Source: Amoebophrya sp. A120
Taxonomy: Eukaryota; Protista; Dinoflagellata
Direction of reading: 5' to 3'
Length of the DNA: 64,000 nt
NCBI GenBank assembly: GCA_905178155.1
Contig: CAJINV010000004.1
Span: 28,432 to 92,431 of the forward strand
The notes beneath the pieces were generated by a model that did not search any database, had not been told where the DNA came from, and saw nothing but the letters and a program-made list of their open reading frames with translations. Below, piece by piece: positions 6,044-64,000 of the stretch. The translations under genes and the position numbers were made by a program. How positions within the stretch are numbered: the stretch's first letter is position 1; the number at the start of each line of letters is the position of its first letter.

Positions 6044-9000
6044 ATGGGGTTGGGGACGACGATGGTCGGTTTTCAGGGAATGCGGATCTTTGAGCAGTTG
6101 GGGCAGCTCCGACTGCTGGGACAGATAGTGGGCAGCACAGATTTCGGGCGTGTTTCCTCGTCTTTCGGAACTTCTTGTTCTTCCGTATCAAATGTAAAAA
6201 TGTCTGGGTCTGGAAGAATCCGAACTTGTGATGCTGCATTTGGATAGTAAAAAAATCTGTATTGCATGACCAGCAAAGGGAATGCATTTTTGGCTACGCG
6301 GAGAGGGCATTTGTCATGCGGAATAGGTATCACGAAGCCCTCAAGAAGTCTGTGATGCTAGGGCATGCATCACAGACATCATGGCCCATGCAAAACGTGC
6401 ATGACAAGTTTCAGAATCTTCCATACCCAGACATTTTTGCATTTGATATTCCGGGGTTGGGAACATCAACATGGCGATACAGCAACCGAGCACAGCGAGG
6501 CCGCCCGCCCTCGTTCCACAACATCCAGGCTGTTCTTCAACGGATTTTATCCTATGTAAAAACGTCCCCACCCCATGCCCACATAGATTATGCTTCTCTT
6601 CTCGTCGTAGTTCGTTCTCCCCTCTTTTTCATCTGAAAATTTGAAGTTTCTCTGTGCTTTAATTTGGTCTTTCCAGTACATAAACACCCCATGCCCACAG
6701 TCAACATGGGGAATCGGCTAGACAAATCCACAAGGTTTGGCTCTTTCGCATGACAAAATTGGAATCGTAGTGTAGTACTGTTTTAGGTAGTTCAGCAGCA
6801 TCACGCATCCAGATACCATGCTGATTGGAGCATGACAAATTTCAAAACGTGAATAGAAAATGCTTCTCATGGGGCTCCGCATGAGAAACATTCTCAGCAT
6901 GCAGATTTGCATATGCAACTATGAGGTGGGGATGTTTTTAAATGCGATAGATTTCGGGCGTGTTTCCTCGTCTTTCGGAACTACTTGTTCTTCCGTATCA
7001 AATGTAAAAATGTCTGGGTCTGGAAGAATCCGAACTTGTGATGCTGCATTTGGATAGTAAAAAAATCTGTATTGCATGACCAGCAAAGGGAATGCATTTT
7101 TGGCTACGCGGAGAGGGCATTTGTCATGCGGAATAGGTATCGCGAAGCCCTCAAGAAGTCTGTGATGCTAGGGCATGCATCACAGACATCATGGCCCATG
7201 CAAAACGTGCATGACAAGTTTCAGAATCTTCCATACCCAGACATTTTTGCATTTGATATTCCGGGGTTGGGAACATCAACATGGCGATACAGCAGCCGAT
7301 CACAGCGAGGCCGCCCGCCCTCGTTCCACAACATCCAGGCTGTTCTTCGACTCCTAGGGACTGTTCTTCTCCGTGGGAAGTTTGTGTGCCGTTGCAGACT
7401 TTCCCTTTACAGAGTTATGAGCCCAAAACATAAGTAGAACTAGAAGTAGCGCCGTCATACATAAGTAGAGTAGCATCAGTAGGCTAGAACTATGAAGGGC
7501 ACTCGCAACCAAGGCGACGAAGCAGTAACAGTCACAGCCAGTAGTAGGCTGACAGGCAAGCAGCAACAGGAAAGCGGGCGACGTAGGCAGCCCGAAGCGA
7601 GAAGAATAGCGAGCGGTCGGAACGGCTAGGAAACGAAGGAAGAGCTGCTGCGATCGTTCGCACAGCTAGGCAAGCAGCAGGCCCAGTAGAGTATGAATGA
7701 TTTGGATTTTGAAACTAGAACTAGCAGGAAGAACCTACCCAACACCGGTAGCAAGATGCAAAGCACTCGAACCCGTAGACCTGCGCATCTGGAATCCTTA
7801 GGGGAATCAGATCGCGACCTGGCTACTTCAGTGCAAAGCTTTAGCGCTTCAGCATCTACAGAGCAAGAAAAGCACTCACCTGACAAACTTCGAAGATTCC
7901 AGCCTTTTCATTCGATCGCAAGATCGGGCAATAACAAAAGGGACAGGTGGAGGATTTGAATTTGTTCGAGTTGCTAACGACCCAGGCGCGACCTGCGGCA
8001 AGGAAGGAAGCTAGTCGGCCAGACAGCACAGCACAGAGGACCACTAGGGTCGTGGATTCGTTCCACCAGCGCGATAGAGAACTTCGACACCAGGCACAGG
8101 GCAAAAATCGCACCCGTGCACAGATTCGAATACGTGGCAGAACAGAGGACGGGCCCACGAGCCGTCGGCGCCAGCTTGCGAGCGGTCGGCATGTCGCCAC
8201 AGGAACGGACAGGCTACGAGCCGTCGGCGCCAGCCTGCGGGCGGTCGACAAGTCAACACAGAGAGGAAGAGGCTACCTTCGAGGTTTGGCCAGGCTGCTC
8301 AAAGGCCCGAGCATGCCACACAGCACACAGATAGATAGATACGAGGTCGAAGGATGTAAGACGTCCCAGGACGGTGCGTGGACGCATTCAAATAGAAAAA
8401 GCGCAGCTGTGACCGACTTAGCAAGTTGCTCTATGAATGGTTTTCGATGCCTCGAATTCCGCAAGAAGATCCCGCCCGAGCGCGTGGCCAGATCTGTTGC
8501 TTCGTGCACTGACAAGATTCCTGCTTTGGCAGCGAATTCATTTTGACGATTTAGGTTCTGACTCGATTCCCAATCGCGTCCCCATTCCAAAAAGTATATC
8601 TGTTTTGAAAAAGAAAAACCCACTAGGCACAGACACAGGAAACTCAGTCACCGTTTCAGGGGGTGAAGTGCAGACCAAACCTGCAGTAGGTGAAACGGCG
8701 CCAGAGTTTCGGCGTCCGGAACGGGTAGAACCCAAAGCCCCACGAGAAAAGCAAGAACAGGCGGCCAGTAGCGGCTGCAGAGGATTCCCCGACCGGGGGG
8801 AGAAGAAAGACGACGATGAAGAAAGACGGATGTTTGTAGATTTAGTTGTAGAGACGAGAACGCACTATGGCTACGCAGCAAGACAGATTTACAGTTTTGA
8901 AACTTTGGACTTTGGAGTGAGGGGGTGTATGACGGATAAGTTTGTAATGCACCCACAGCCTCACAGAGTACAAACTTGATCCACTCCAATAGTCCAAAGA

Positions 9001-39600: not shown

Positions 39601-42600
39601 AACCGCATGAGATGAAATGCCCTCTCCGCGTAGCGCAAATATACAACTGGTTTCCTCTTGCTGGTCATGCATGCGTCCGTAGCCATTTTGGCTCAAGACT
39701 TCTTGTCTTGTGGCCCTTTTCCCACTTTAGAGACGGGGCCGCACCCCCGTGAGATCAATTCGTCCGGACTCACCGTGGAGATCAACCCCCGTGAGATCCA
39801 AGATCCGTAGAGGCACTCTGTAACAGGCATCAGGTGCGGCTGGTGAACCTTTTGACTCACACGTAGATTGTAGATTGTTTCTCTAAAAGAAAAATCAAAG
39901 CAAAAAAAATGAGCACACACTTGCCCTCCATCCGAAGCGCGCACGTGCGCAATGAAGCTTCGATGGTCCCAGCGGGCATAACGCCCGGTCTTACTCGTTA
40001 CTCCCTTCATCTGCCCTCACCAGCCGTCCCCGATGGCGTTCGATTGTGGGGCCCTTGATCCCCACGTAGAAGCTCTTCGCGGGTTTCTTCTTGCCGGGTG
40101 GAAGACGGTGCGCGTCGGTTTTTTTTTGGCGGTCTGGGAGTTCCGTGTAGGTCTTTGTTCCTAGGGGCGCTTGTCGACGCCCTGCGGCGGAGCGGGCGAT
40201 CGGGAGGACTCGACGCTACTTGTGGACGCCATCTCCGAGCTGTCGATAGTAGAGGAGTTCTGCCGCACATCTCCGCGTCACGAGGATGCCGCGCCCACTA
40301 GCGGATCGCCCTGCTGCGCTGGAGATCAGGGACTTTTTATTTATTGTTTTTCGTTTGTCTCACACTCTCACACACTCGAATACTTATGAAAAGATCATAG
40401 TACCAGACCCATATTTCCTTTTTTTCTTCGTTTGAGTTTGTCGCCCCTCCTAATCCTTTGGTCTGTGTTGTGGCAGCGGATTGTCCTCTGACCCTTACGT
40501 AGCCTTATGGCAACCCCTTTCCATATGATTGAACTCAGGTTTTGTGTGGTAGCTGCGCTGGCAGCGCGTTTGTGCGGCTCTCTACTCCTGCGAGGTGCGA
40601 CGTTTTCAATGCGGCTGGGCTTTGCGGATCCAAACTGCGCGGAGGTGGTGGTGGCGATGGCGGGTTGATTACGGTGCGGGAATTCGGGTCGCCAGCCCCG
40701 GGTCTCACAGAGTACTGAACGGTGCTTACCAGCTGGATAGACGAGTGAGGGGTGATTACTCGTAGGGGAGTTGTTTATGGCTCGCGGTCGTCTTTCTGTC
40801 GTCCTGGCGTCGTTCGTGGGGGTGTGGCGCGGGGGTGGAGCGATCCTCGACGAGCGGTGCGGTTGCGGCTTTGTCGCGTCGAGCGGAGCGGAGCGTCGCT
40901 GTGTCTCCTCGGCATCGTCTCTTCGTGGCCTGTCGTGCGTAGTCCTAGGTGGGGTCCCTATCCCGGCCATTGCAATAGGGCTTTTTGGTGGACTGCTGGA
41001 GACCCCAGTCCAGTCGCATCGCGACGTTATTTTTCAGCTGCAGGAGACCCCAGCTATCCCTTTGCTCTGCCCAAGTCCCTCGTCTTTGTCTGTTCGTCGT
41101 GTTTTGCCTGGTTTACCGCTGGAAACGATGCCGTGCTTTTGGAATTCCGGTTTCGACCAGGACATGCAGCCACTCTAACGGTTTCACTCGGGTCCGACCC
41201 CCGTTAGAGCTTGACCCCATCCCCCCGAGGTCCTACCTGAGGTAGTGGTCGTAAAGGGGGTATAGTGGTTGAGGGGTAAATAAGGTCATGCAATACAATT
41301 TTTAGTTTAGAAGCTCCCAGACCCGGACATATTATTTGCAATCCATACGAGAGCGACAATAAGTTCCCCGAAATTTACCTGGTCCCACAGCTTCGGGAGG
41401 TGCCAAACAACGTGGACAACCACGGGACGGCGGTTGCTTTGTATTAAAAGGAAAAATTATCCCCCCTCCCCATATCGAAACAAAGTTTCTGATGCTGGAT
41501 TTCCGTACATAAATCAGATTTGTCTTGCTGGAGAGGACTGCAGGCATATGCCAAGCCTCAGTCGAGAGCAGGGTTTGACGTAGGCGCCTAGCATGGCGAA
41601 TGTGTATTCTCTAAGCCCAACAGCATCACAGACCACCTGGAAAGTGCGGGGCGCTCTCTGGACTTGCCTTCTTGCAAGACAGACAGGATTTGAGGTCACA
41701 AATGCGCGTCACAAATTTTCAGACGGTGGATATGTTTTCAATATGGGTAGGGGGGATTTTTCCTTACGATACTTTGTGGGAGAAGTTCAAGGAAGAGGTT
41801 ATGAAAGCCTCAGGTTGGAAATCCTCAAAGTGGAAATAATTTGTTATGCAAAAAAACGACTCCAGTTGAAGCGGCATTTGTAGTCGGCGCATGTCAAATT
41901 TCCCGGGCACTTAAAGCACGTCTGTCATGCAGGTTAACGCAAGGGGGTGCCCTTCTGTCGTGCTACGCAGCGCTCCAATTCTTCACCCCTAGCAGGACAA
42001 TAGTCGGCCTCCATTGCGTTCTCTGCAATACAGTCTTTTTTGCGTCGCATTTCATGCATCACAAATCATTTCCACTTTGAGCATTTCCAACCTGAGGCTT
42101 GCATAGAGGTGATCCGCGTGCAGCTGCTGAACCCGCTACTGAATGAGGCCAACGGCGGGACGGCGGACCGCCGGATTTCGGAGTGGTTCGACAAGGTGCA
42201 ATTATTGAAGCGTCAGGTTTGAAATCGTCAAAGTTGAAATAGTTTGTCACGCATGAAACGGATACCAGTTAGACCTACAGTCTGTAGTCGGCGCATGACA
42301 AATTTTCCCGGTCCTGGAAGCGGGTCTGTCATGCGGTTTAGGGCAAAAGGGCTGCCTTCTGTCATGCTAGTCAGCAGTCCAACTTTTACCAGGACTATAA
42401 TCTGCTTCCCATGCGTCCTCTGCAATAGAGTCACTTCTTGTATCGCATTTTATGCATGACAAACAAGGTCCGAGCACGGGGACAGAGTCCCCGTGCGGCG
42501 ACCTTCCGGCATTTGTCTGGGACGAGTTCGGGGGTTGTCGTGGTGGCGCACAGGGCGGGCAGGCCCCTGCAGCTCGGTGCCTCTGTGTGTCCTGCGCTCC

Positions 42601-51600: not shown

Positions 51601-54600
51601 TTTTGAAGAGGCATCGAAAGGATGTCCCGCTGCGAAGTAGCCGGATTTCGCCTTCAATGCTTATCGCAGGAGCCTGCGGGCCGCCGCGGGCTCCACCACT
51701 TCCCCGCTCCACCACTTCCGGTTGGCCACGACTGGACTGTCCTTCATAGGCCGCCGAGAGAGTCGCTCGCCTCGCTCGATTTTTTTTTGCTTCATCCTTC
51801 TCTTTTTGCTTTCCTGCGTTTCAAAAAAACTATGCATGTAGGGATCGCACTTGACAAGATGGGCGTCCGTCGCGGCGGGATCTCATCTCAGGGTTTGGTT
51901 TAAGTTTCAGGGGTTAATAGGGTTCTCCAATTACCCCGCTCCAACAACTTTTCGACGCACTAAATAGCACTAGAATCCGTCCCAAATCTGTAACGCAAAA
52001 GGCGTAGTCTCTCTGTCTCTCCTTTCACTTTTGCCATGCTTGCCTTACAAATTCATGTAACAGTTGAGGGTGTAACGTTTGAGAATCCCATAAGGTGCAG
52101 ACTCAAGATTTTAGACAAGGAAAATTCCAGAAGTACATCAAAAATCGAGCACCATGTCCTGTGGATTGCTCTGGAAGATGGGAAAGATAGTACCTCCCTG
52201 TTCTCATATTGGCCCGGCCCGGGCTGCGGTCCCTATCAAATGTAAAAATGTCTGGGTCTGGAAGAGTGCCAGACTTGTCATGCAGATTTTGCATGAAATA
52301 TGACGTCTGTAATGCATAACCTGGCATCACAGATTTTTAGCGGGCTGTCTGATGCGTATCCCGCATGAGAAATACCCTCTCCATGTAGCTGCACAAACTG
52401 GACCCCTCTTGCTTGTCATGCAATACAGATTTTTTTAGAATGCAGAGACAGCATCACAAGTTGCAACCTTCCAGACCCAGACATTTTTGCAGTTCATAGT
52501 CCCCTTTTCTTCACCATATCCTCTGCGTCGCCTTTCCATCTGGAGATCTATGCACTGCAAAAACAAAATTACTCTTTCTGGGGTCGTTCTTGTTGCGCAG
52601 AGCGTGAGCGCATGACAGTTCTTGACAGCTCCCTCTACTTGCAATGCTAATCATGCTAGAGTTCCTGTAGTAAGGCTGCAATAAAACCGAAATCTTCACC
52701 ATGTTTTTGCGATGGATATGTCCTTCATGAAGGCGAACCCAAAACCGCTGCATGACTCGTTGATGCCACGCGTCCCGGCTGGTGGAGTAGATTTTGTTAC
52801 ACGTCGAAAAACATGCGGCCACGCAACACAAATTCTATCTTCAATGCGAATTATGCATGACAAAACTTCAAAAAGCAGCATTATACTCTTCTTTCCCGGA
52901 TCCGCCCATGTTGAGACCTTGTCGTATTTCCCTGGTGCTTATGAAAGTGCCTAACAACTCCCTCTCGCCCTCATGATTTGCATTGCATGAACAGCAAGAC
53001 AAGACGGGGCTTTCTCATCAAAAATCGAGCACCATGTCCTGTGGATTGCTCGGGTCATGGGGTGACGGGACAGGCGGTTGGCTCGGGTAGGCTTCATCTA
53101 AGTGGCGGCTTTGTTCAGTGGGTCCCACACAACCGGAAACGCCGCCGGCTTCGGCGTTCGTCTTCCATCACCACGCAGAGCAACACCACGACAATAAGTA
53201 CTCCAAGCATTCTGCGGCCAGGTCTTTCCGGATCCAATGAGCAATGGCCGTCTCTTGGAAAGTCGCGCCGCGGGGGCAATCCAAGGGCCCCCCTTTTGCC
53301 TAAGAAAAAGCACTCCCCTTGGCGTTCCTTCCCCCGACCTAAAATGGCCGATTTCGGAATCAAAAAAAGTACCCCCCTCAGGCACCCCCCTGGAGGGAGG
53401 CCCCTGGGTGCCGCCTGTCGCCTTTATAGAGTTTGGGCCGGCCTCGTTTGTAAACGAGCCCCCGAGCCAGTTGCGCCAAAGGCGAAACACTTTTGCGGCA
53501 GATGCGCGCTTGCCCTTTCTACTCGAGAAGGAGTCGCGGCTGGTCCGGGCCGATAGGCCTGCAGAAACAAATGGGGCGGGCCGCTACTAGCACTTCTAGC
53601 CGCAACGCAGACAAATCATCTCGCCCCGCCGCCACGACCCCGCGTCAGGGGGGTGCTCGATTTTTGATGTACTTCTGGAATTTTCCTTGTCTAAAGATTG
53701 CCACCTCTCGCCATGTCCTGTGAATTGCATCTGGGGGCCGTGGGGCGGCTGGATATGGATTCTTGCAAAAATGTCTGGTTCTGAAAGAATGCAACGTCTC
53801 ATGTGAAGATGCACAATTTGCATGACGCATGATGTCATCTGTGATGCATGCACTAGCATCAAAGATGTGATGATTCTGCGAGGGTGGTCTCCTGAAGATG
53901 CCCATCTCGCATGAGAAATAATGCCCACTCACCGTAGCAAAAACTGGACTCCTTTATTTGCTGTTCAACTTCAGGCAATGCATATAGTACACGATATTTT
54001 TGATATTTACGTAGGGTCACTTCCAAAGGGAGAAGGTAGCAAGCATCACAAGTTGCATCCTTTCCCTGCCGGACCCAGACACGTTTGCATTTGATCGTGG
54101 AGTGCGTGCAGCAAGTCTTGTGTTACGCCATGTGATCCCGATAAGGGGACAATCACAGGCTACCGACAAAAAACGCGTTGGGAACAATTCGGGGGGGTGT
54201 GCCCCGGCAGTGAATCGCTAACCACCGGTTGCGTTCCAGAGCCGCCACCCTGTCCCGTGCCCGTGGATTGCGTATGGGGCCCGTGGGGTCCGTATCAATC
54301 GTAAAAAGCTGCTGTCGTATATCAACTGCAAAAATATCTGGGTCTGAGAAGTGTAATAATTCAACTTGTCATGCAGATTTTCCATGACAGACCCATGAGG
54401 TCTGGAATGCAGGGCTTAGCATGACAGACTCGGCGAGGTCCTCTCTGCCATGCCTGTCCTGCGTAAGAAACTCCCTTCCAACTTGGTCAAAAGTGGACGG
54501 CTTTTGGCACTCATACAACACAGATTTTTGCATGCTTCAGATTTGCCATGACAAGTTACCACCTTTCAGACATCCAGGAATAGTTATTTGCAATTGATAC

Positions 54601-56907
54601 TGTGCTGTAAGCTTACGACACAGATGAATGCGCGCGAGCACTATTCTGAGTAAAAACGCCCCCACCCCAAGTTTCTCTGTGCTTTATTTTGGTCTCTTCC
54701 AGTACATAAACACCCCAGAGCTGTGCTTTATTTTAGTCTCTTCCAGTACATATACACCCCAGAGTTGTGGTTGAATTTCGTGGTCTTTTCCAGTACATAA
54801 ACACCCCAGAGTTGTCATGCACATCTACACGCCAAAAAAGTTTCTCATGCGGAGCCCCATAAGAAACATTTTCTAGTCGTGTTTGGGGATTTGTAATGCT
54901 AGAACCAGCATGATATGCTAGATCGGTGGTGCTGCTGAACTAGCTAAACAGGACCACACTACGAGGACAAACTTATCATGCGAAACAACCAAAGCTGGCT
55001 GATTTGTCCAGCAGATTTCCCATCTTGTCTCTGGTGTGGGGACGTTTTTGCTCAGGATAGAATATGCGCGAAGACCGAATCGGTTGTCTTGCATGTGTAG
55101 AACTGCGACCGCGGGGACCACTATGGTAGCTGCACGAAGCCTGGCAAGTTCCCATCTGCTTTGTCGCGGCAGTGTAGAAGAGCAAACTATTGGAGATGAA
55201 AAACACGCAAAGTTCCTGCTCACAATAAAATCAGCGTTACATACAACTTCCAGTGGAGCGCTTTTTTCGTGCGATTCCCCATGGAGTGCTTGCGGGGGCG
55301 CGTCTTGCGGTATGCATTGCAAATATAACGTAGAAGTACTGTAGTCTGGTGGGTCTGAAGTTGTGACGCAGCAACATGCTTACTTGATGGACAAAGAGAC
55401 AATCTGGGGTGCGTGAGCAGTCTGCTGCTTTATCGTGCTGGATGATGGACGCACTTTCTTGTCATGCGCCACTGCGACAGAGTTCGGAAGAAGCCGAGGT
55501 GAGAAGCTTCGCATCTTGCTGTGATACCGTGCAGTAGCCTTTTTTGGCTGGTGCCTCAGTACAACCGGCTCAGACGGGCTCCTGGTGCTGGGGTCGGGCC
55601 CTCATCTGGAGCGGAGACGCTGTTCTTGAACAATAGGTGTAGGACATCCCCGTTTGTTCGGAGGGGGCCGCGGCCAGGTGAATAGTCTTTGCACCCCAGT
55701 TTGGCTCTGGGCCTCCAGTTATGCCGCAGCGCTGTCGTTTTAGATGGTGCAGCGGAGGCCACGACCTAGTATGCTTGTACCACGCACCTCAAGTAAGAGG
55801 AACGCGCTGCAAAATTAAGATGAGCGCGCCCGCGCGCTCTCGTCGTTTTATTCCCTTCTGCGACTTCTGCCGCGTACATTTTTTGCCGATGCATGGCTCC
55901 GGAACCGCATACTAGAAGTTTGCGTCTTGCGCGCCACCGCTTCCGTGGCTTGTTTCCAGCTTCTGCCTGCACTCATGCGCTTGGCTGTGCCCGCTTTTTT
56001 GGCGGGCCATTCTTGTTCTGATGCCGGTCCCTTCTCGTGAATCACGAAGCAATCTCGATTCGAGTCGCATTTTGCAAAGATCAGCGCGACACGTCGTCTG
56101 TATCTACTTGCCAGAAGACCCAGGAGATCTACTTTAATATTTGCATTTGATATAATGACAGTGGGGCAGTCACACGCGCACACGTCCAAAATGGACAGTT
56201 GAGGTTAATGGTGGGGTCTTATCCACCTGTGCAAAAACGTACAACCGGCTCCAGTCCCAGACGGATTTGTCATCCAAAATAATCTAACCAGCATCCATGC
56301 CTGAATTCATCTTCAAATGTGTCTGATGCGCAGCCCCATGCGAAGCTGCACCTTCTAATGCTAATATCTGGAAGCGTTATAATTTCAATTTCATGCTAGA
56401 AAAAATGATGACGGACGAGCTAGTAATCAATGCTGGATTCGCAGCTACGTGGCTCCTCTGACACCACTAGCGAAACACGACTCCCCCGCAACGAGCCCAA
56501 AAAAGAAAAAGGTGTCATCTTCATGCGCAACAGCCATAAGCTTGTTGATTTGTCGTGTGCTGCTGGCGGCAGAATGAGTTCCCATGATCTTGACTCTGGG
56601 GTTTGGGCCGCGTTTTTGCAAAGGATAACTCTGCTGGGGAGGTCCCTCTGAAACTCAAGGTTGCCAGATGCCTGCGTGTTACTGCCAGCCAGGATGTGCG
56701 TGCGGGCCACATCAGAACTGTAACGGCGGCAATTGTTGCTCTGGCGGGATAAGCGACTGGACCTGCTTCAGGAAAGATAACGGGTGGTCAGAGTGTTACG
56801 CTGATGAAAATAACCCAGGGTGTCACAATGGGATGCACGGTCCCTGGGCGGGAGGCTGGTGGGAGTGCAAAAACATGAAAAATGGTCGGATTCATTACGC
56901 GAGGTAA
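30635..56907 (+). CDS. Giant adhesin/micronemal-like protein (>30 exons): Pro/Thr linkers, several F5/8C-discoidin/galactose-binding-like domains, PAN/apple domains, TSP1-like repeats and an EF-hand pair. The 3' part (>50 kb) looks degenerate and may be a separate gene or pseudogene
   Basis: Motifs PWLQIDLGQTRRVQSVRL, PGRYVVVQLPG, LSLLELQVFG; YCQRFCDEDRGCQAY, WCKTLCDKDKDCRAY; WSECSTTCGPGVRFR, repeated CPVDC; CIDRDGSGFLSETEY. The frame is restored at junctions checked (31296, 32034). Confidence 0.7.
30724..30966. mobile_element. Introner family D
   Basis: TIRs, DR tgcag. Confidence 0.92.
31296..31544. mobile_element. Introner family D
   Basis: TIRs, DR caggg/cccgg, frame restored. Confidence 0.85.
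32034..32183. mobile_element. Introner family G (TIR ...tgcaaaagtatcgtact)
   Basis: DR cggca, frame restored. Confidence 0.92.
32497..32822. mobile_element. Introner family F (TIR ...ggaaaaatcccccctccccata)
   Basis: TIRs, DR gggag. Confidence 0.92.
33099..33326. mobile_element. Introner family E
   Basis: TIRs, DR gaacg. Confidence 0.9.
33413..33691. mobile_element. Introner family B
   Basis: Perfect ~31-bp TIR, DR aaggc. Confidence 0.95.
34026..34238. mobile_element. Introner family E (diverged)
   Basis: DR atacc/atgcc. Confidence 0.8.
34433..34544. mobile_element. Minimal 112-bp introner (TIR tatccaggNaaaa..cacccat..ccccatcc)
   Basis: TIRs, DR gcgtc. Confidence 0.9.
34802..34979. mobile_element. 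Introner family G-like
   Basis: TIR tatgNattgcaaatat, DR agcag/agcaa. Confidence 0.85.
35163..35424. mobile_element. Introner family A
   Basis: Perfect TIR, DR cgatc. Confidence 0.95.
35466..35787. mobile_element. Introner family F
   Basis: TIRs, DR gaaga. Confidence 0.92.
35991..36368. mobile_element. Introner family C with a ~60-bp internal insert
   Basis: DR ccgcg. Confidence 0.9.
36476..36933. mobile_element. Introner family A with a nested 171-bp retro-insert
   Basis: DR cacgg. Confidence 0.92.
36677..36847 (+). mobile_element. 5'-truncated copy of the SL-capped retro-element (type R-A)
   Basis: 18-bp TSD ggtcaYgcaatacaaatt (36659-36676/36848-36865); homologous to ~41113-41283. Confidence 0.9.
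37062..37312. mobile_element. Introner family D
   Basis: DR accga. Confidence 0.9.
37420..37706. mobile_element. Introner family B
   Basis: DR catac/cacac. Confidence 0.9.
37793..38019. mobile_element. Introner family E
   Basis: DR caggc. Confidence 0.9.
38115..38420. mobile_element. Introner (TIR ...tgaaaaatgccccccacccc)
   Basis: TIRs, DR aattc. Confidence 0.9.
38583..38799. mobile_element. Introner family D
   Basis: DR atgta. Confidence 0.85.
39672..41283 (+). mobile_element. Full-length non-autonomous SL-capped retro-element (type R-A)
   Basis: 9-bp TSD ggtcatgca (39663-39671/41284-41292); SL at the 5' end; 3' end ...ggggtaaataa; no convincing ORF. Confidence 0.9.
39676..39697 (+). 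other. Dinoflagellate spliced-leader (DinoSL) relic, perfect 22-mer
   Basis: TCCGTAGCCATTTTGGCTCAAG matches DCCGTAGCCATTTTGGCTCAAG. It is followed by ACTTC rather than a GT donor, so it is not an SL RNA gene. Confidence 0.97.
41442..41771. mobile_element. Introner family F
   Basis: DR ctttg. Confidence 0.9.
41800..42105. mobile_element. Introner family C
   Basis: DR gaggt. Confidence 0.9.
42464..43881 (-). mobile_element. Helitron/IS91-like non-autonomous rolling-circle candidate (type H)
   Basis: On the minus strand it reads TTACTATTTA...hairpin-CCTTG; inserted at AA|TTT with no TSD. Confidence 0.7.
42745..43414. repeat. Seven tandem ~95-104-bp units, each with a strong GC-rich hairpin
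   Basis: Units start at 42745, 42844, 42944, 43040, 43143, 43247 and 43342; cctaggtca-cgcggggac/gtccccgcg-tgacctagg. Confidence 0.95.
44037..44322. mobile_element. Introner family A
   Basis: DR tggtc. Confidence 0.9.
44368..44523. mobile_element. Introner family G
   Basis: DR gcccg. Confidence 0.9.
45072..45395. mobile_element. Introner family F
   Basis: DR taccg. Confidence 0.92.
45613..45875. mobile_element. Introner family A
   Basis: DR gtccg. Confidence 0.92.
46193..46321. mobile_element. Degenerate introner (TIR atctgtaatgcNaaaa)
   Basis: Inverted ends; DR decayed. Confidence 0.65.
46476..46721. mobile_element. Degenerate introner (TIR tgaaaaaa..tgtctcagtctc)
   Basis: Inverted ends; DR ccgtt/ccggc. 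Confidence 0.65.
46786..47113. mobile_element. Degenerate introner family A
   Basis: gtctgggtctggaa/ttccagacccagac. Confidence 0.75.
47194..47583. mobile_element. Introner family B with a nested 97-bp insert (47444-47540)
   Basis: DR gacaa; nested TSD gcatgacaact. Confidence 0.88.
47790..48081. mobile_element. Introner family B
   Basis: DR gcatg/gcctg. Confidence 0.88.
48137..48427. mobile_element. Introner family A
   Basis: DR cgcgc. Confidence 0.88.
48535..48683. mobile_element. Introner family G
   Basis: DR cgtga/catga. Confidence 0.88.
48920..49107. mobile_element. Introner family G-like
   Basis: TIR tatgcattgcaaaa. Confidence 0.8.
49156..49757. mobile_element. Introner family A with a nested 317-bp hairpin element
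   Basis: DR gcttg. Confidence 0.88.
49293..49609 (+). mobile_element. Second type-H (Helitron/IS91-like) element, containing six 13-bp tandem repeats (49344-49420)
   Basis: TTAATATTTA...hairpin-CCTTG; inserted at AA|TTT with no TSD. Confidence 0.7.
49776..50106. mobile_element. Degenerate introner family A
   Basis: DR ggtcc. Confidence 0.75.
50218..50489. mobile_element. Introner family A
   Basis: DR ttggg. Confidence 0.92.
50518..52092. mobile_element. Introner family D inflated by a nested ~1.33-kb element (~50610-51944)
   Basis: DR aggtg; inner IR ttggagcgggg/ccccgctccaa. Confidence 0.85.
52234..52498. mobile_element. Introner family A
   Basis: DR gtccc. Confidence 0.92.
53754..54096. 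mobile_element. Degenerate introner family A
   Basis: Decayed TIRs, DR ctgga/gtgga. Confidence 0.75.
54320..54599. mobile_element. Degenerate introner family A
   Basis: tatcaactgcaaa/tttgcaattgata. Confidence 0.75.
54642..55059. mobile_element. Introner family B with three stacked R-B retro-inserts in its left TIR
   Basis: Inserts 54670-54710, 54721-54754 and 54769-54801, each followed by caccccagag. Confidence 0.88.
55311..56152. mobile_element. Degenerate family-A-like introner with several hundred bp of extra internal sequence
   Basis: tatgcattgcaaatat...atatttgcatttgata; gggtctgaag/agacccag remnants. Confidence 0.55.
56220..56627. mobile_element. Degenerate introner family B
   Basis: tgcaaaaacg/cgtttttgcaaaggata. 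Confidence 0.65.
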
Positions 56908-57310
56908 AAAAGTCTTCTTCAAATAATCCAGCTAAAAAATCAGCCGGAATGCTGATATTTTGGTGTTGTGGTGTGGTCCCGTATCAATGAGCGGTACGAG
57001 ATTGTGCCAAGATTGCGTAAAAAGTAATTAATATGTTGGAGGCGAAACAAGATTACTTACGTAGACTGAGGAGAGAGCGACGGCCGCAGTTTGATTTCTC
57101 CATTACCAAAGGAAGACGCGAAGGCCGCAGTTTGATTTCTTCTCACCAATAGGGAGACGAGCTGGAGCTCAAGAAGATGAACAAGAACACTATTATCGTT
57201 ATCGACGTGAAAAAATCCAAATCTGAAATACAAATAAGTACCTCAATCCGAGTCTTTCATCATTTTCTCACTCGTACAGCTTGACGACGCGAATTTTCAA
57301 TTTGAATTTA

Positions 57311-57747
57311 TGTTGGACGACTGTAGTCCCGATGTTCCATGAAGATGCTGAATGCGAAACAGCATGAAGATCCATCCACTTTTGGTCCCGTTTGGACGCA
57401 AGATGATCAGATGATGATGATGTCCATAGCTCCTGTTTGAGCATATTCCAGTACATGATGATGATGTACTCAGGTCGTGTTTAGACGACGAAGCATCGTG
57501 AATCCCGATGCTATGGCACGACTGCAATCAATCGATACATTCGGAACCTTGTACGCTTTCAGGCTTAGGAGTTGCACGCAAGAGCTGAAGGCTCTCGGAA
57601 CGTAAACACACCGCACGCGAACCCGCGTGCTATGCTTACCACGCATCACATTCTGCACTGTATGAAGATCGTGAGTTCATTCCAACCGACCAATGATCAT
57701 GTCGCATTCGCACCCAGGCTAGAGAGATTCTGAGTGGCTTTCAGACA
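57311..57747 (+). repeat. 5' LTR
   Basis: tgttgga...tcagaca, matches 63564-64000. Confidence 0.93.
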
Positions 57748-63528: not shown

Positions 63529-63563
63529 CCATTTGCCAACGTTCGAACTGCTGCGGGGGGGAA

Positions 63564-64000
63564 TGTTGGACGACTGTAGTCCCGATGTTCCATGAAGATG
63601 CTGAATGCGAAACAGCATGAAGATCCATCCACTTTTGGTCCCGTTTGGACGCAAGATGATCAGATGATGATGATGTCCATAGCTCCTGTTTGAGCATATT
63701 CCAGTACATGATGATGATGTACTCAGGTCGTGTTTAGACGACGAAGCATCGTGAATCCCGATGCTATGGCACGACTGCAATCAATCGATACATTCGGAAC
63801 CTTGTACGCTTTCAGGCTTAGGAGTTGCACGCAAGAGCTGAAGGCTCTCGGAACGTAAACACACCGCACGCGAACCCGCGTGCTATGCTTACCACGCATC
63901 ACATTCTGCACTGTATGAAGATCGTGAGTTCATTCCAACCGACCAATGATCATGTCGCATTCGCACCCAGGCTAGAGAGATTCTGAGTGGCTTTCAGACA
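63564..64000 (+). repeat. 3' LTR (ends at the window edge)
   Basis: Preceded by PPT gggggggaa (63555-63563). Confidence 0.93.

Follow-up and report, generated by a model that had tools for sequence, protein, structure and literature searches.

A stretch of 64,000 nucleotides from the genome of the dinoflagellate Amoebophrya sp. A120 (C4:28432-92431 of the 115.5-Mb assembly; the whole stretch is referred to here as the window) contains an introner in which three very short inserts lie one behind the other within a terminal inverted repeat. Introners are transposons that create new introns (for a general description see PMC7789003). The question raised by this locus is how one point of such a transposon could come to be interrupted again and again by sequences which share their end. 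The original prediction for the window was repeated site-specific target-primed reverse transcription (TPRT) by a retroelement specialised on family-B introners. Our data indicates that the inserts are 5'-truncated copies of a short, non-coding family, here called fam1. It is likely, in our judgement, that fam1 spreads by site-specific retroposition as a non-autonomous element of the non-LTR (lacking long terminal repeats) type, resembling a short interspersed element (SINE). The features of the array, with the three inserts named U1 to U3, are as follows.

54642-55059 (strand not assigned): host family-B introner with TAT...ATA ends, 418 bp, of which 132 bp are stacked inserts and regenerated targets.
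54653-54669 (+) and 55032-55048 (-): inverted-repeat motif AAAACGYCCCCACMCCA of this introner, located by motif search.
54663-54669 (+): upstream target copy CACCCCA, part of the left inverted repeat; insertion falls between GTCCC and CACCCCA, or between CAC and CCCA if CAC is element-templated.
54670-54710 (+): U1, a 5'-truncated fam1 copy of 41 bp, GGTCTC subfamily.
54711-54720 (+): regenerated target CACCCCAGAG after U1.
54721-54754 (+): U2, 34 bp, of U1's subfamily, ending in ATATA.
54755-54768 (+): regenerated target CACCCCAGAG(TTGT) after U2; CACCCCAGAG itself occupies 54755-54764, and the final 4 nt are ambiguous between target TTGT and element CTGT.
54769-54801 (+): U3, a copy of 33-37 bp of the other subfamily (AATTT...GGTCTT), with a 3-nt insertion and a final 21 nt matching the consensus perfectly.
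54802-54815 (+): native inverted-repeat continuation CACCCCAGAGTTGT..., which is the downstream duplication copy after U3; CACCCCAGAG at 54802-54811.

All three inserts terminate in TTCCAGTACATA(A/T)A followed by CACCCCAGAG, and the native repeat resumes downstream of U3 (...TTGTCATGC). The coordinates 54670-54801 confirm what had been predicted here, namely inserts of 41, 34 and 33 bp with a common end, each followed by a regenerated target. U1 is identical to the 3' end of a full-length copy, L010 (42/42 positions, L010 475-516). One public-run contig matches 54654-54821 with zero differences, thus the array is not an assembly artefact. The features of a family-B introner, i.e. TAT...ATA ends, terminal inverted repeats and presence in many copies, were all found. 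Chance can be excluded as the origin of the shared end, since a 12-mer of the fam1 tail has 7 matches at ≤1 mismatch in the window as compared to 0.14 expected. A second family-B introner of the window carries a longer copy.

6548-6949 (strand not assigned): second host family-B introner, TAT...ATA, with the repeat motif at 6559-6575 (+) and 6922-6938 (-).
6569-6583 (+): upstream copy of the 15-bp target duplication CACCCCATGCCCACA.
6584-6684 (+): 5'-truncated fam1 copy of 101 bp, 100% identical to the 3' end of the full-length copy C10:567843-568323.
6685-6699 (+): downstream copy of the 15-bp target duplication CACCCCATGCCCACA.

This copy and its 15-bp duplication were correctly described before, except that homology to the full-length element begins already at 6576, within the claimed duplication. 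It was observed that the final 8 nt of the duplication (TGCCCACA; 6576-6583 and 6692-6699) are foreign to the usual family-B repeat and resemble the element's own sequence at the truncation point of the 6584 copy (TGGCCACA). A similar oddity exists in L036. It may result from microhomology at the 5' junction or from a more complex event.

The 14-nt tail of fam1 occurs 52 times in the 115.5-Mb genome, while the reversed control occurs 0 times, and the tail followed by CACCCCA at ≤1 mismatch gives 40 copies. It was found that at least 46 of the 52 copies lie at the identical point of the family-B inverted repeat, between ...AAAACGTCCC and CACCCCA(G/T)AGT.... This was judged from junction views, in which five copies were placed by their 20-nt flanks alone, and C2:1646436, C6:2678279 and C12:1355412 were not among the flanks listed. 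Both arms of the repeat are occupied, with about 27 copies on the arm continuing TTGTCATGC and about 22 on the arm continuing CAAGATGG, and the orientation is always towards the introner interior. At least 1,303 exact family-B repeat ends are empty in the 115.5 Mb, thus the target is a tiny fraction of the genome. A tail occurring mostly outside introners would have spoken against the prediction; the genome-wide search gave the opposite result, with few off-target copies (L034, L047 and L062, plus one doubtful match). In another assembly, contigs JACKZZ010008364.1 and JACKZZ010010661.1 carry fam1 at the identical site with duplications of 8 and 18 bp.

The ends of the copies differ sharply in behaviour. 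BLAST with the 101-bp copy gave 42 matches, all of which end at query position 101, with starts spread from 1 to 65. Anchored on the repeat, the inserts are 29-516 bp long with variable starts, as had been expected of 5' truncation, and every duplication begins at CACCCCA. The target duplications are 7-18 bp, or 4-15 bp if CAC is element-borne. The two longest copies, L010 (516 bp, 18-bp duplication) and L015 (481 bp, 13-bp duplication), both open with TACACACAAAT, which places the full length of fam1 at about 0.5 kb (about 480-516 bp); only 2-3 copies are full-length. Fam1 has no long open reading frame (ORF). Copies at separate loci are 99-100% identical across 101 nt, therefore fam1 has been active recently. 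A constant 3' end, variable 5' truncation, variable target-derived duplications and one recurrent position are together the anatomy expected of TPRT, and it is this genome-wide anatomy that fits the original prediction.

Two of the off-target copies deserve mention. L062 (C5:4091521-4092030, minus strand) is near full-length, 96% identical to L010, and lies outside any introner repeat with no obvious target duplication; this locus may have served as a master or source. L047 (C5:3673179-3673276) has its own 10-bp duplication, CCCCCGCTAG, and sits in a palindromic CCCCCGCTAG...CTAGCGGGGG hairpin element.

If site-specific retroposition is correct, a discrete fam1 RNA of about 0.5 kb with the 3' end ...ATAAA or ...ATAAACAC would be copied by a reverse transcriptase (RT) supplied in trans, directly onto a bottom-strand nick in the family-B inverted repeat. 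The nick would lie at ...AAAACGTCCC(CAC)^CCCA..., some 22-24 nt in from the introner end. Synthesis would begin at the fixed RNA 3' end ...GGTCTYTTCCAGTACATAAA(CAC) and would mostly abort after 29-230 nt. The top-strand cut would fall 4-18 nt further in, giving a target duplication of variable length. The duplication would recreate the target beside the intact outer half of the repeat, so that renewed insertion could build stacked arrays.

It should be noted here that the same inserts could in principle be made without RNA. A broken family-B repeat could invade another copy through the CACCCCA... flank and copy a variable stretch of it, leaving a DNA-templated repair patch, with no RNA or RT involved. 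Most inserts are indeed very short (29-48 bp), no partner RT was found, and the CAC adjacent to the element looks donor-templated: L016 and L017 have CGC and CAT upstream and CAC downstream, and three copies of an ATAAAA subfamily all have CGC downstream. Beyond these first three bases the duplications tell against it. Repeat variants private to a site are common to both duplication copies (e.g. TTATAGTTG, AAAATAAC, TACTAGTCA, GCGCTGTCA), thus these are true target duplications, not donor-copied, and staggered cuts in the target are required. The private variants on both sides likewise exclude that the downstream copy was made from a donor flank or from a long read-through RNA. L047 carries a duplication of its own in unrelated sequence, no preference of a fam1 subfamily for one arm was seen in the junction views, and the conserved structured core described below suggests selection at the RNA level. 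A repair origin is therefore considered very improbable. As to the junction itself, fam2, a sister family introduced below, terminates in ...AAAACA(C) though its native target has no CA there. We lean towards the CAC at the 3' junction being templated by the element, in which case the nick would be CAC^CCCA and the duplications 3 nt shorter. Since CAC is common to the element end and the target, every duplication length is uncertain by 3 nt. The predicted window duplications of about 7, 10 and 14 bp are thus real as duplications; their lengths are less firm than given, that of U3 being 10-14 bp and all being subject to the 3-nt uncertainty.

How many insertions the window array represents is a separate matter. 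Tandem Repeats Finder reports 3.1 copies of a 44-bp period with 88% matches at 54677-54815. U1 and U2 are of one subfamily, with 2/34 positions different, such that U2 with its target repeats the 3' 34 nt of U1 with its target as 44 bp with 2 differences. U2 with its target fits equally well as an insertion that made a 10-bp duplication and as a tandem duplicate, 44 bp long, of U1 and its target, and only two independent insertions are therefore secure in the array. At both diagnostic positions U3 agrees with the other subfamily (AATTT and GGTCTT, vs ATTTT and GGTCTC in U1 and U2). Together with the perfect consensus in its final 21 nt, this indicates an independent insertion and not a decayed duplicate of U1 or U2. 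Its homology to the element reaches left to about 54765/54766; the 5' boundary is ambiguous because element CTGT overlaps target TTGT, and the duplication is 10-14 bp accordingly. One parse lets U2 and U3 start at the same element position, (C/T)TGTG, as tandem duplication would have it. The 5' end CTGTGC is found again in the unrelated copies L028 and L030, which suggests microhomology at the 5' junction, and a shared 5' end is thus no proof of slippage.

That the window array arose by one or two insertions and then by tandem duplication of a 44-bp unit of insert and target, through slippage or unequal exchange, is possible in view of these similarities, though on the whole we doubt it. The subfamily of U3 speaks against it, and so do two other stacks with units of very different length; in addition, it would leave some 45 other independent copies unexplained. 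A slippage-type tandem repeat describes the locus poorly, the units being 41, 34 and 33-37 bp from two subfamilies with about 50 dispersed copies. The check for slippage foreseen by the original prediction, identical 5' junctions, leaves U3 as an independent insertion, and of the three insertions predicted in the window two are secure. The other two stacks are at C14:33216-33491, whose three units measure about 46, 97 and 113 bp, the duplications being 7, 8 and 12 bp, and at C14:50771-50933, where a unit of about 155 bp is stacked with one of about 48 bp. In both of them stacking through repeated insertion is unambiguous.

In the three arrays the duplications never decrease going inward from the introner terminus. 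This is expected if new copies enter the duplicate that retains the native outer half of the repeat. The unit nearest the introner terminus would then be the youngest, a polarity which is only suggested, as identity to the consensus agrees with it in two arrays (100, 94 and 78% in the window; 95 and 76% in L045) and not in L019 (82, 90 and 92%). With about 50 insertions and a few thousand targets, independent events would give fewer than the three repeats seen to be hit more than once. The resemblance of the window array to repeat-spacer arrays, which had been pointed out earlier, is formal only.

When the 5' part of L010 together with the core (402 bp) was used as a query, a sister family appeared, fam2, with about 49 copies and a length of up to about 690 bp.

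L066-L082: fam2 copies, e.g. C23:680872-681558 (= L067 1191-1877), C15:832361 and C1:1413235.

Fam1 and fam2 have a common 160-bp core at about 80% identity and are collinear through the tail, which is GGTCTTGTTTCCAGACAAAACA in fam2 vs GGTCTTTTCCAGTACATAAACA in fam1 (fam2 tail end CCAGACAAAACA; shared pattern GGTCTT..TTCCAG.ACA.AAACAC). The shared core is predicted to fold into a conserved structure with two-sided changes in 7/50 pairs (9 sequences), which is suggestive only. The fam2 copies examined are all located in the repeat of family-A introners, between TTCCAGAC(C) and CAGACATTTTTGC (also given as TTCCAGAC(C) followed by CAGACATTTTTGCATTTGATA), about 21 nt from the introner end and in outward orientation. 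Fam2 also shows variable 5' truncations, and its duplications begin at C(C)AGAC. At C5:5771385-5772381 (-) three fam2 3' junctions occur at an exact spacing of 488 bp, in a stacked or tandemly duplicated array.

A third element in the same genome, R-A, is reported to be of the long interspersed nuclear element (LINE) type, and its 3' end ...GGTTGAGGGGTAAATAAG lies inside GGTCATGCAATACAAATT of family-A introners. Like fam1 it has an exact site inside an introner; it differs in element and target, fam1 being 0.5 kb and non-coding. No sequence similarity was found between the R-A LINE in the window and fam1 or fam2, and fam2 matched only the 22-nt family-A repeat. With a different 3' end and a different site, the view that the inserts belong to an element and target distinct from R-A is upheld, and the idea of family-specific specialists is strengthened by the finding of fam2 in the family-A repeat.

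The pair of sister families raises another way of explaining the choice of target, in which this would be written in the element RNA, in its tail or elsewhere, and fam1 and fam2 would share a single generic RT machinery. A core and a collinear tail are common to the two while the exact targets differ, the junction CAC looks RNA-templated, and no autonomous element was seen at the fam1 site, the one site checked. An internal stretch of fam1 is similar to the target repeat at 19/26 nt, with a shuffle p of about 0.01-0.04 in L015. This last similarity is weak in L010 (p 0.1-0.27) and has no counterpart in fam2 (p about 0.8), and neither target has an antisense match; an internal guide or mimic in fam1 was rejected for lack of robustness (p 0.01-0.27 over both copies). 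The arm preference that long flank pairing would produce is not seen. Site-specific endonucleases, on the other hand, are the established targeting mechanism in the R1, Tx1 and R2 clades. Specification by the RNA is accordingly considered unlikely. If it were true, it would amount to a naturally programmable TPRT system, and arrays would grow at the end beside the introner terminus.

Retroposition in trans needs a source of enzyme. At least 10 intact ORFs of 1,245-1,481 aa with both apurinic/apyrimidinic-type endonuclease (APE) and RT domains were found, thus trans-acting machinery exists in this genome. Fam1 would depend on a LINE of such a kind. Several points nevertheless weigh against site-specific retroposition. 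No RT-coding element with the fam1 or fam2 tail was found, no fam1 or fam2 3' end has any of the 106 RVT_1 matches in the 10 kb upstream of it, and none of 32 Exo_endo_phos matches adjoins such an end. The search for a longer coding relative by the 101-bp tail, the 402-bp 5' part and core, and the degenerate tail pattern returned only the short fam1 (≤516 bp) and fam2 (≤ about 690 bp), so that the autonomous partner, for which the original prediction had called, did not appear. At the fam1 site there is no other abundant element, only repeat variants, fam1 and a few singletons. Fam1 has no poly(A) or simple-repeat tail. Rfam gave no match at E ≤1 on L010 900-1600, thus no tRNA, 7SL, 5S or small nuclear RNA (snRNA) head is recognised and fam1 is not a SINE in the strict sense. 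Two sister RNAs with similar tails and different targets are hard to reconcile with a single protein partner, and the fam1 RNA intermediate and its RT are what we infer from the copies.

The evidence on splicing of the host is of the same limited kind. In one contig, 54289 is joined to 55279 and 55309 to 56157; the run it comes from is presumed to be RNA. Within the removed 989-bp stretch (54290-55278) are a family-A introner and the family-B host with its array, and this intron is thus larger than the introner. This single contig agrees with the inserts lying in sequence removed from transcripts; in three runs which are certainly RNA the window locus is not covered. With the site in sequence removed from host transcripts, insertions would probably be near-neutral.

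The known targets of site-specific retroelements are ribosomal DNA, telomeres, snRNA and spliced-leader genes, microsatellites and one DNA transposon (Tx1D). Zepp in Chlorella, the telomeric TRAS and SART, and HeT-A form nested arrays in which 5'-truncated retroposons follow each other head to tail at regenerated sites; in fam1 the site is regenerated as a duplication within a transposon inverted repeat, and the units go down to 33-46 bp. For the class of target, the closest precedent is the Tx1 (Tx1L) LINE, which inserts into the piggyBac-type DNA transposon Tx1D of Xenopus laevis (PMC4494074). Tx1L and fam1 are both non-LTR retroelements with a specific target inside a multicopy non-autonomous DNA transposon, and the result is composite in both. 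Tx1L is autonomous (APE plus RT), whereas fam1 lacks an ORF and the search for coding relatives with its tail gave none; the fam1 target, unlike that of Tx1L, is the inverted repeat of an intron-generating transposon, and the insertions probably lie in spliced-out sequence. For the non-autonomous state, the closest precedents are the short internally deleted elements (SIDEs) of R2 and pairs of the SINEU/Keno type, short RNAs which borrow the machinery of a site-specific LINE and land at that LINE's site (PMC4494074). These too are without a poly(A) tail and, like fam1, may depend on co-transcription with the target. They have a parent LINE with the same 3' end at the same site, whereas none was found for fam1, and the sister families fam1 and fam2 occupy different sites.

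A literature search, including the Amoebophrya genome paper (PMC7789003), gave no description of retroelements targeting introners. New here are an introner inverted repeat as the target, two sister families, both non-coding, whose exact targets differ, and the finding of no partner that shares the tail. At least three unrelated or sister retroelement lineages in this genome are each tied to an exact introner nucleotide, which suggests that introners are a safe harbour, colonised repeatedly. As similar RNAs with different targets, fam1 and fam2 are a natural experiment in the change of target specificity among TPRT elements, which is relevant to current attempts at retargeting R2-type and LINE-type enzymes. 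Introner introns are also made longer and more diverse by the inserts, which should be masked when introner families are classified.

A number of minor observations were made in addition. Fam1 and fam2 are clustered near the starts of two contigs, at C14:33-140 kb (7 fam1 and 3 fam2 junctions within about 110 kb) and at C4:35-245 kb, which includes the window (6 fam1 junctions within about 210 kb); a broken APE-RT LINE lies at C14:39431-41742. A variant of the family-B repeat, AAAACGGGGCCCACACCCCA, has at least 8 copies (e.g. C2:2976079, C4:7555979, C5:8117475). Two occurrences of TAGTACCCATAATTTT directly followed by CACCCCAGAG (C4:3328652, C56:564) may represent a fam1 tail that has diverged. 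The degenerate tail pattern picked up by chance a satellite at C5:2245956-2247772, with 33/59-bp spacing and based on GTGCTGCACCTAGGTCTGACACCTAG. Near-matches to the tail, TTCCAGTACATG, at window positions 57446-57457 and 63699-63710 lie in a segment that is duplicated at a distance of about 6.25 kb, and they are unrelated to fam1, 57300-57600 being nearly identical to 63560-63860. The 3' part of the dinoflagellate spliced leader, TTTTGGCTCAAG, is present on the minus strand of L047 at about position 1161 (C5 near 3673600), followed by GTATTG, and may mark a gene for spliced-leader RNA or the relic of one. Another copy of TTTTGGCTCAAG is located at position 39686 of the window, inside the R-A LINE region.

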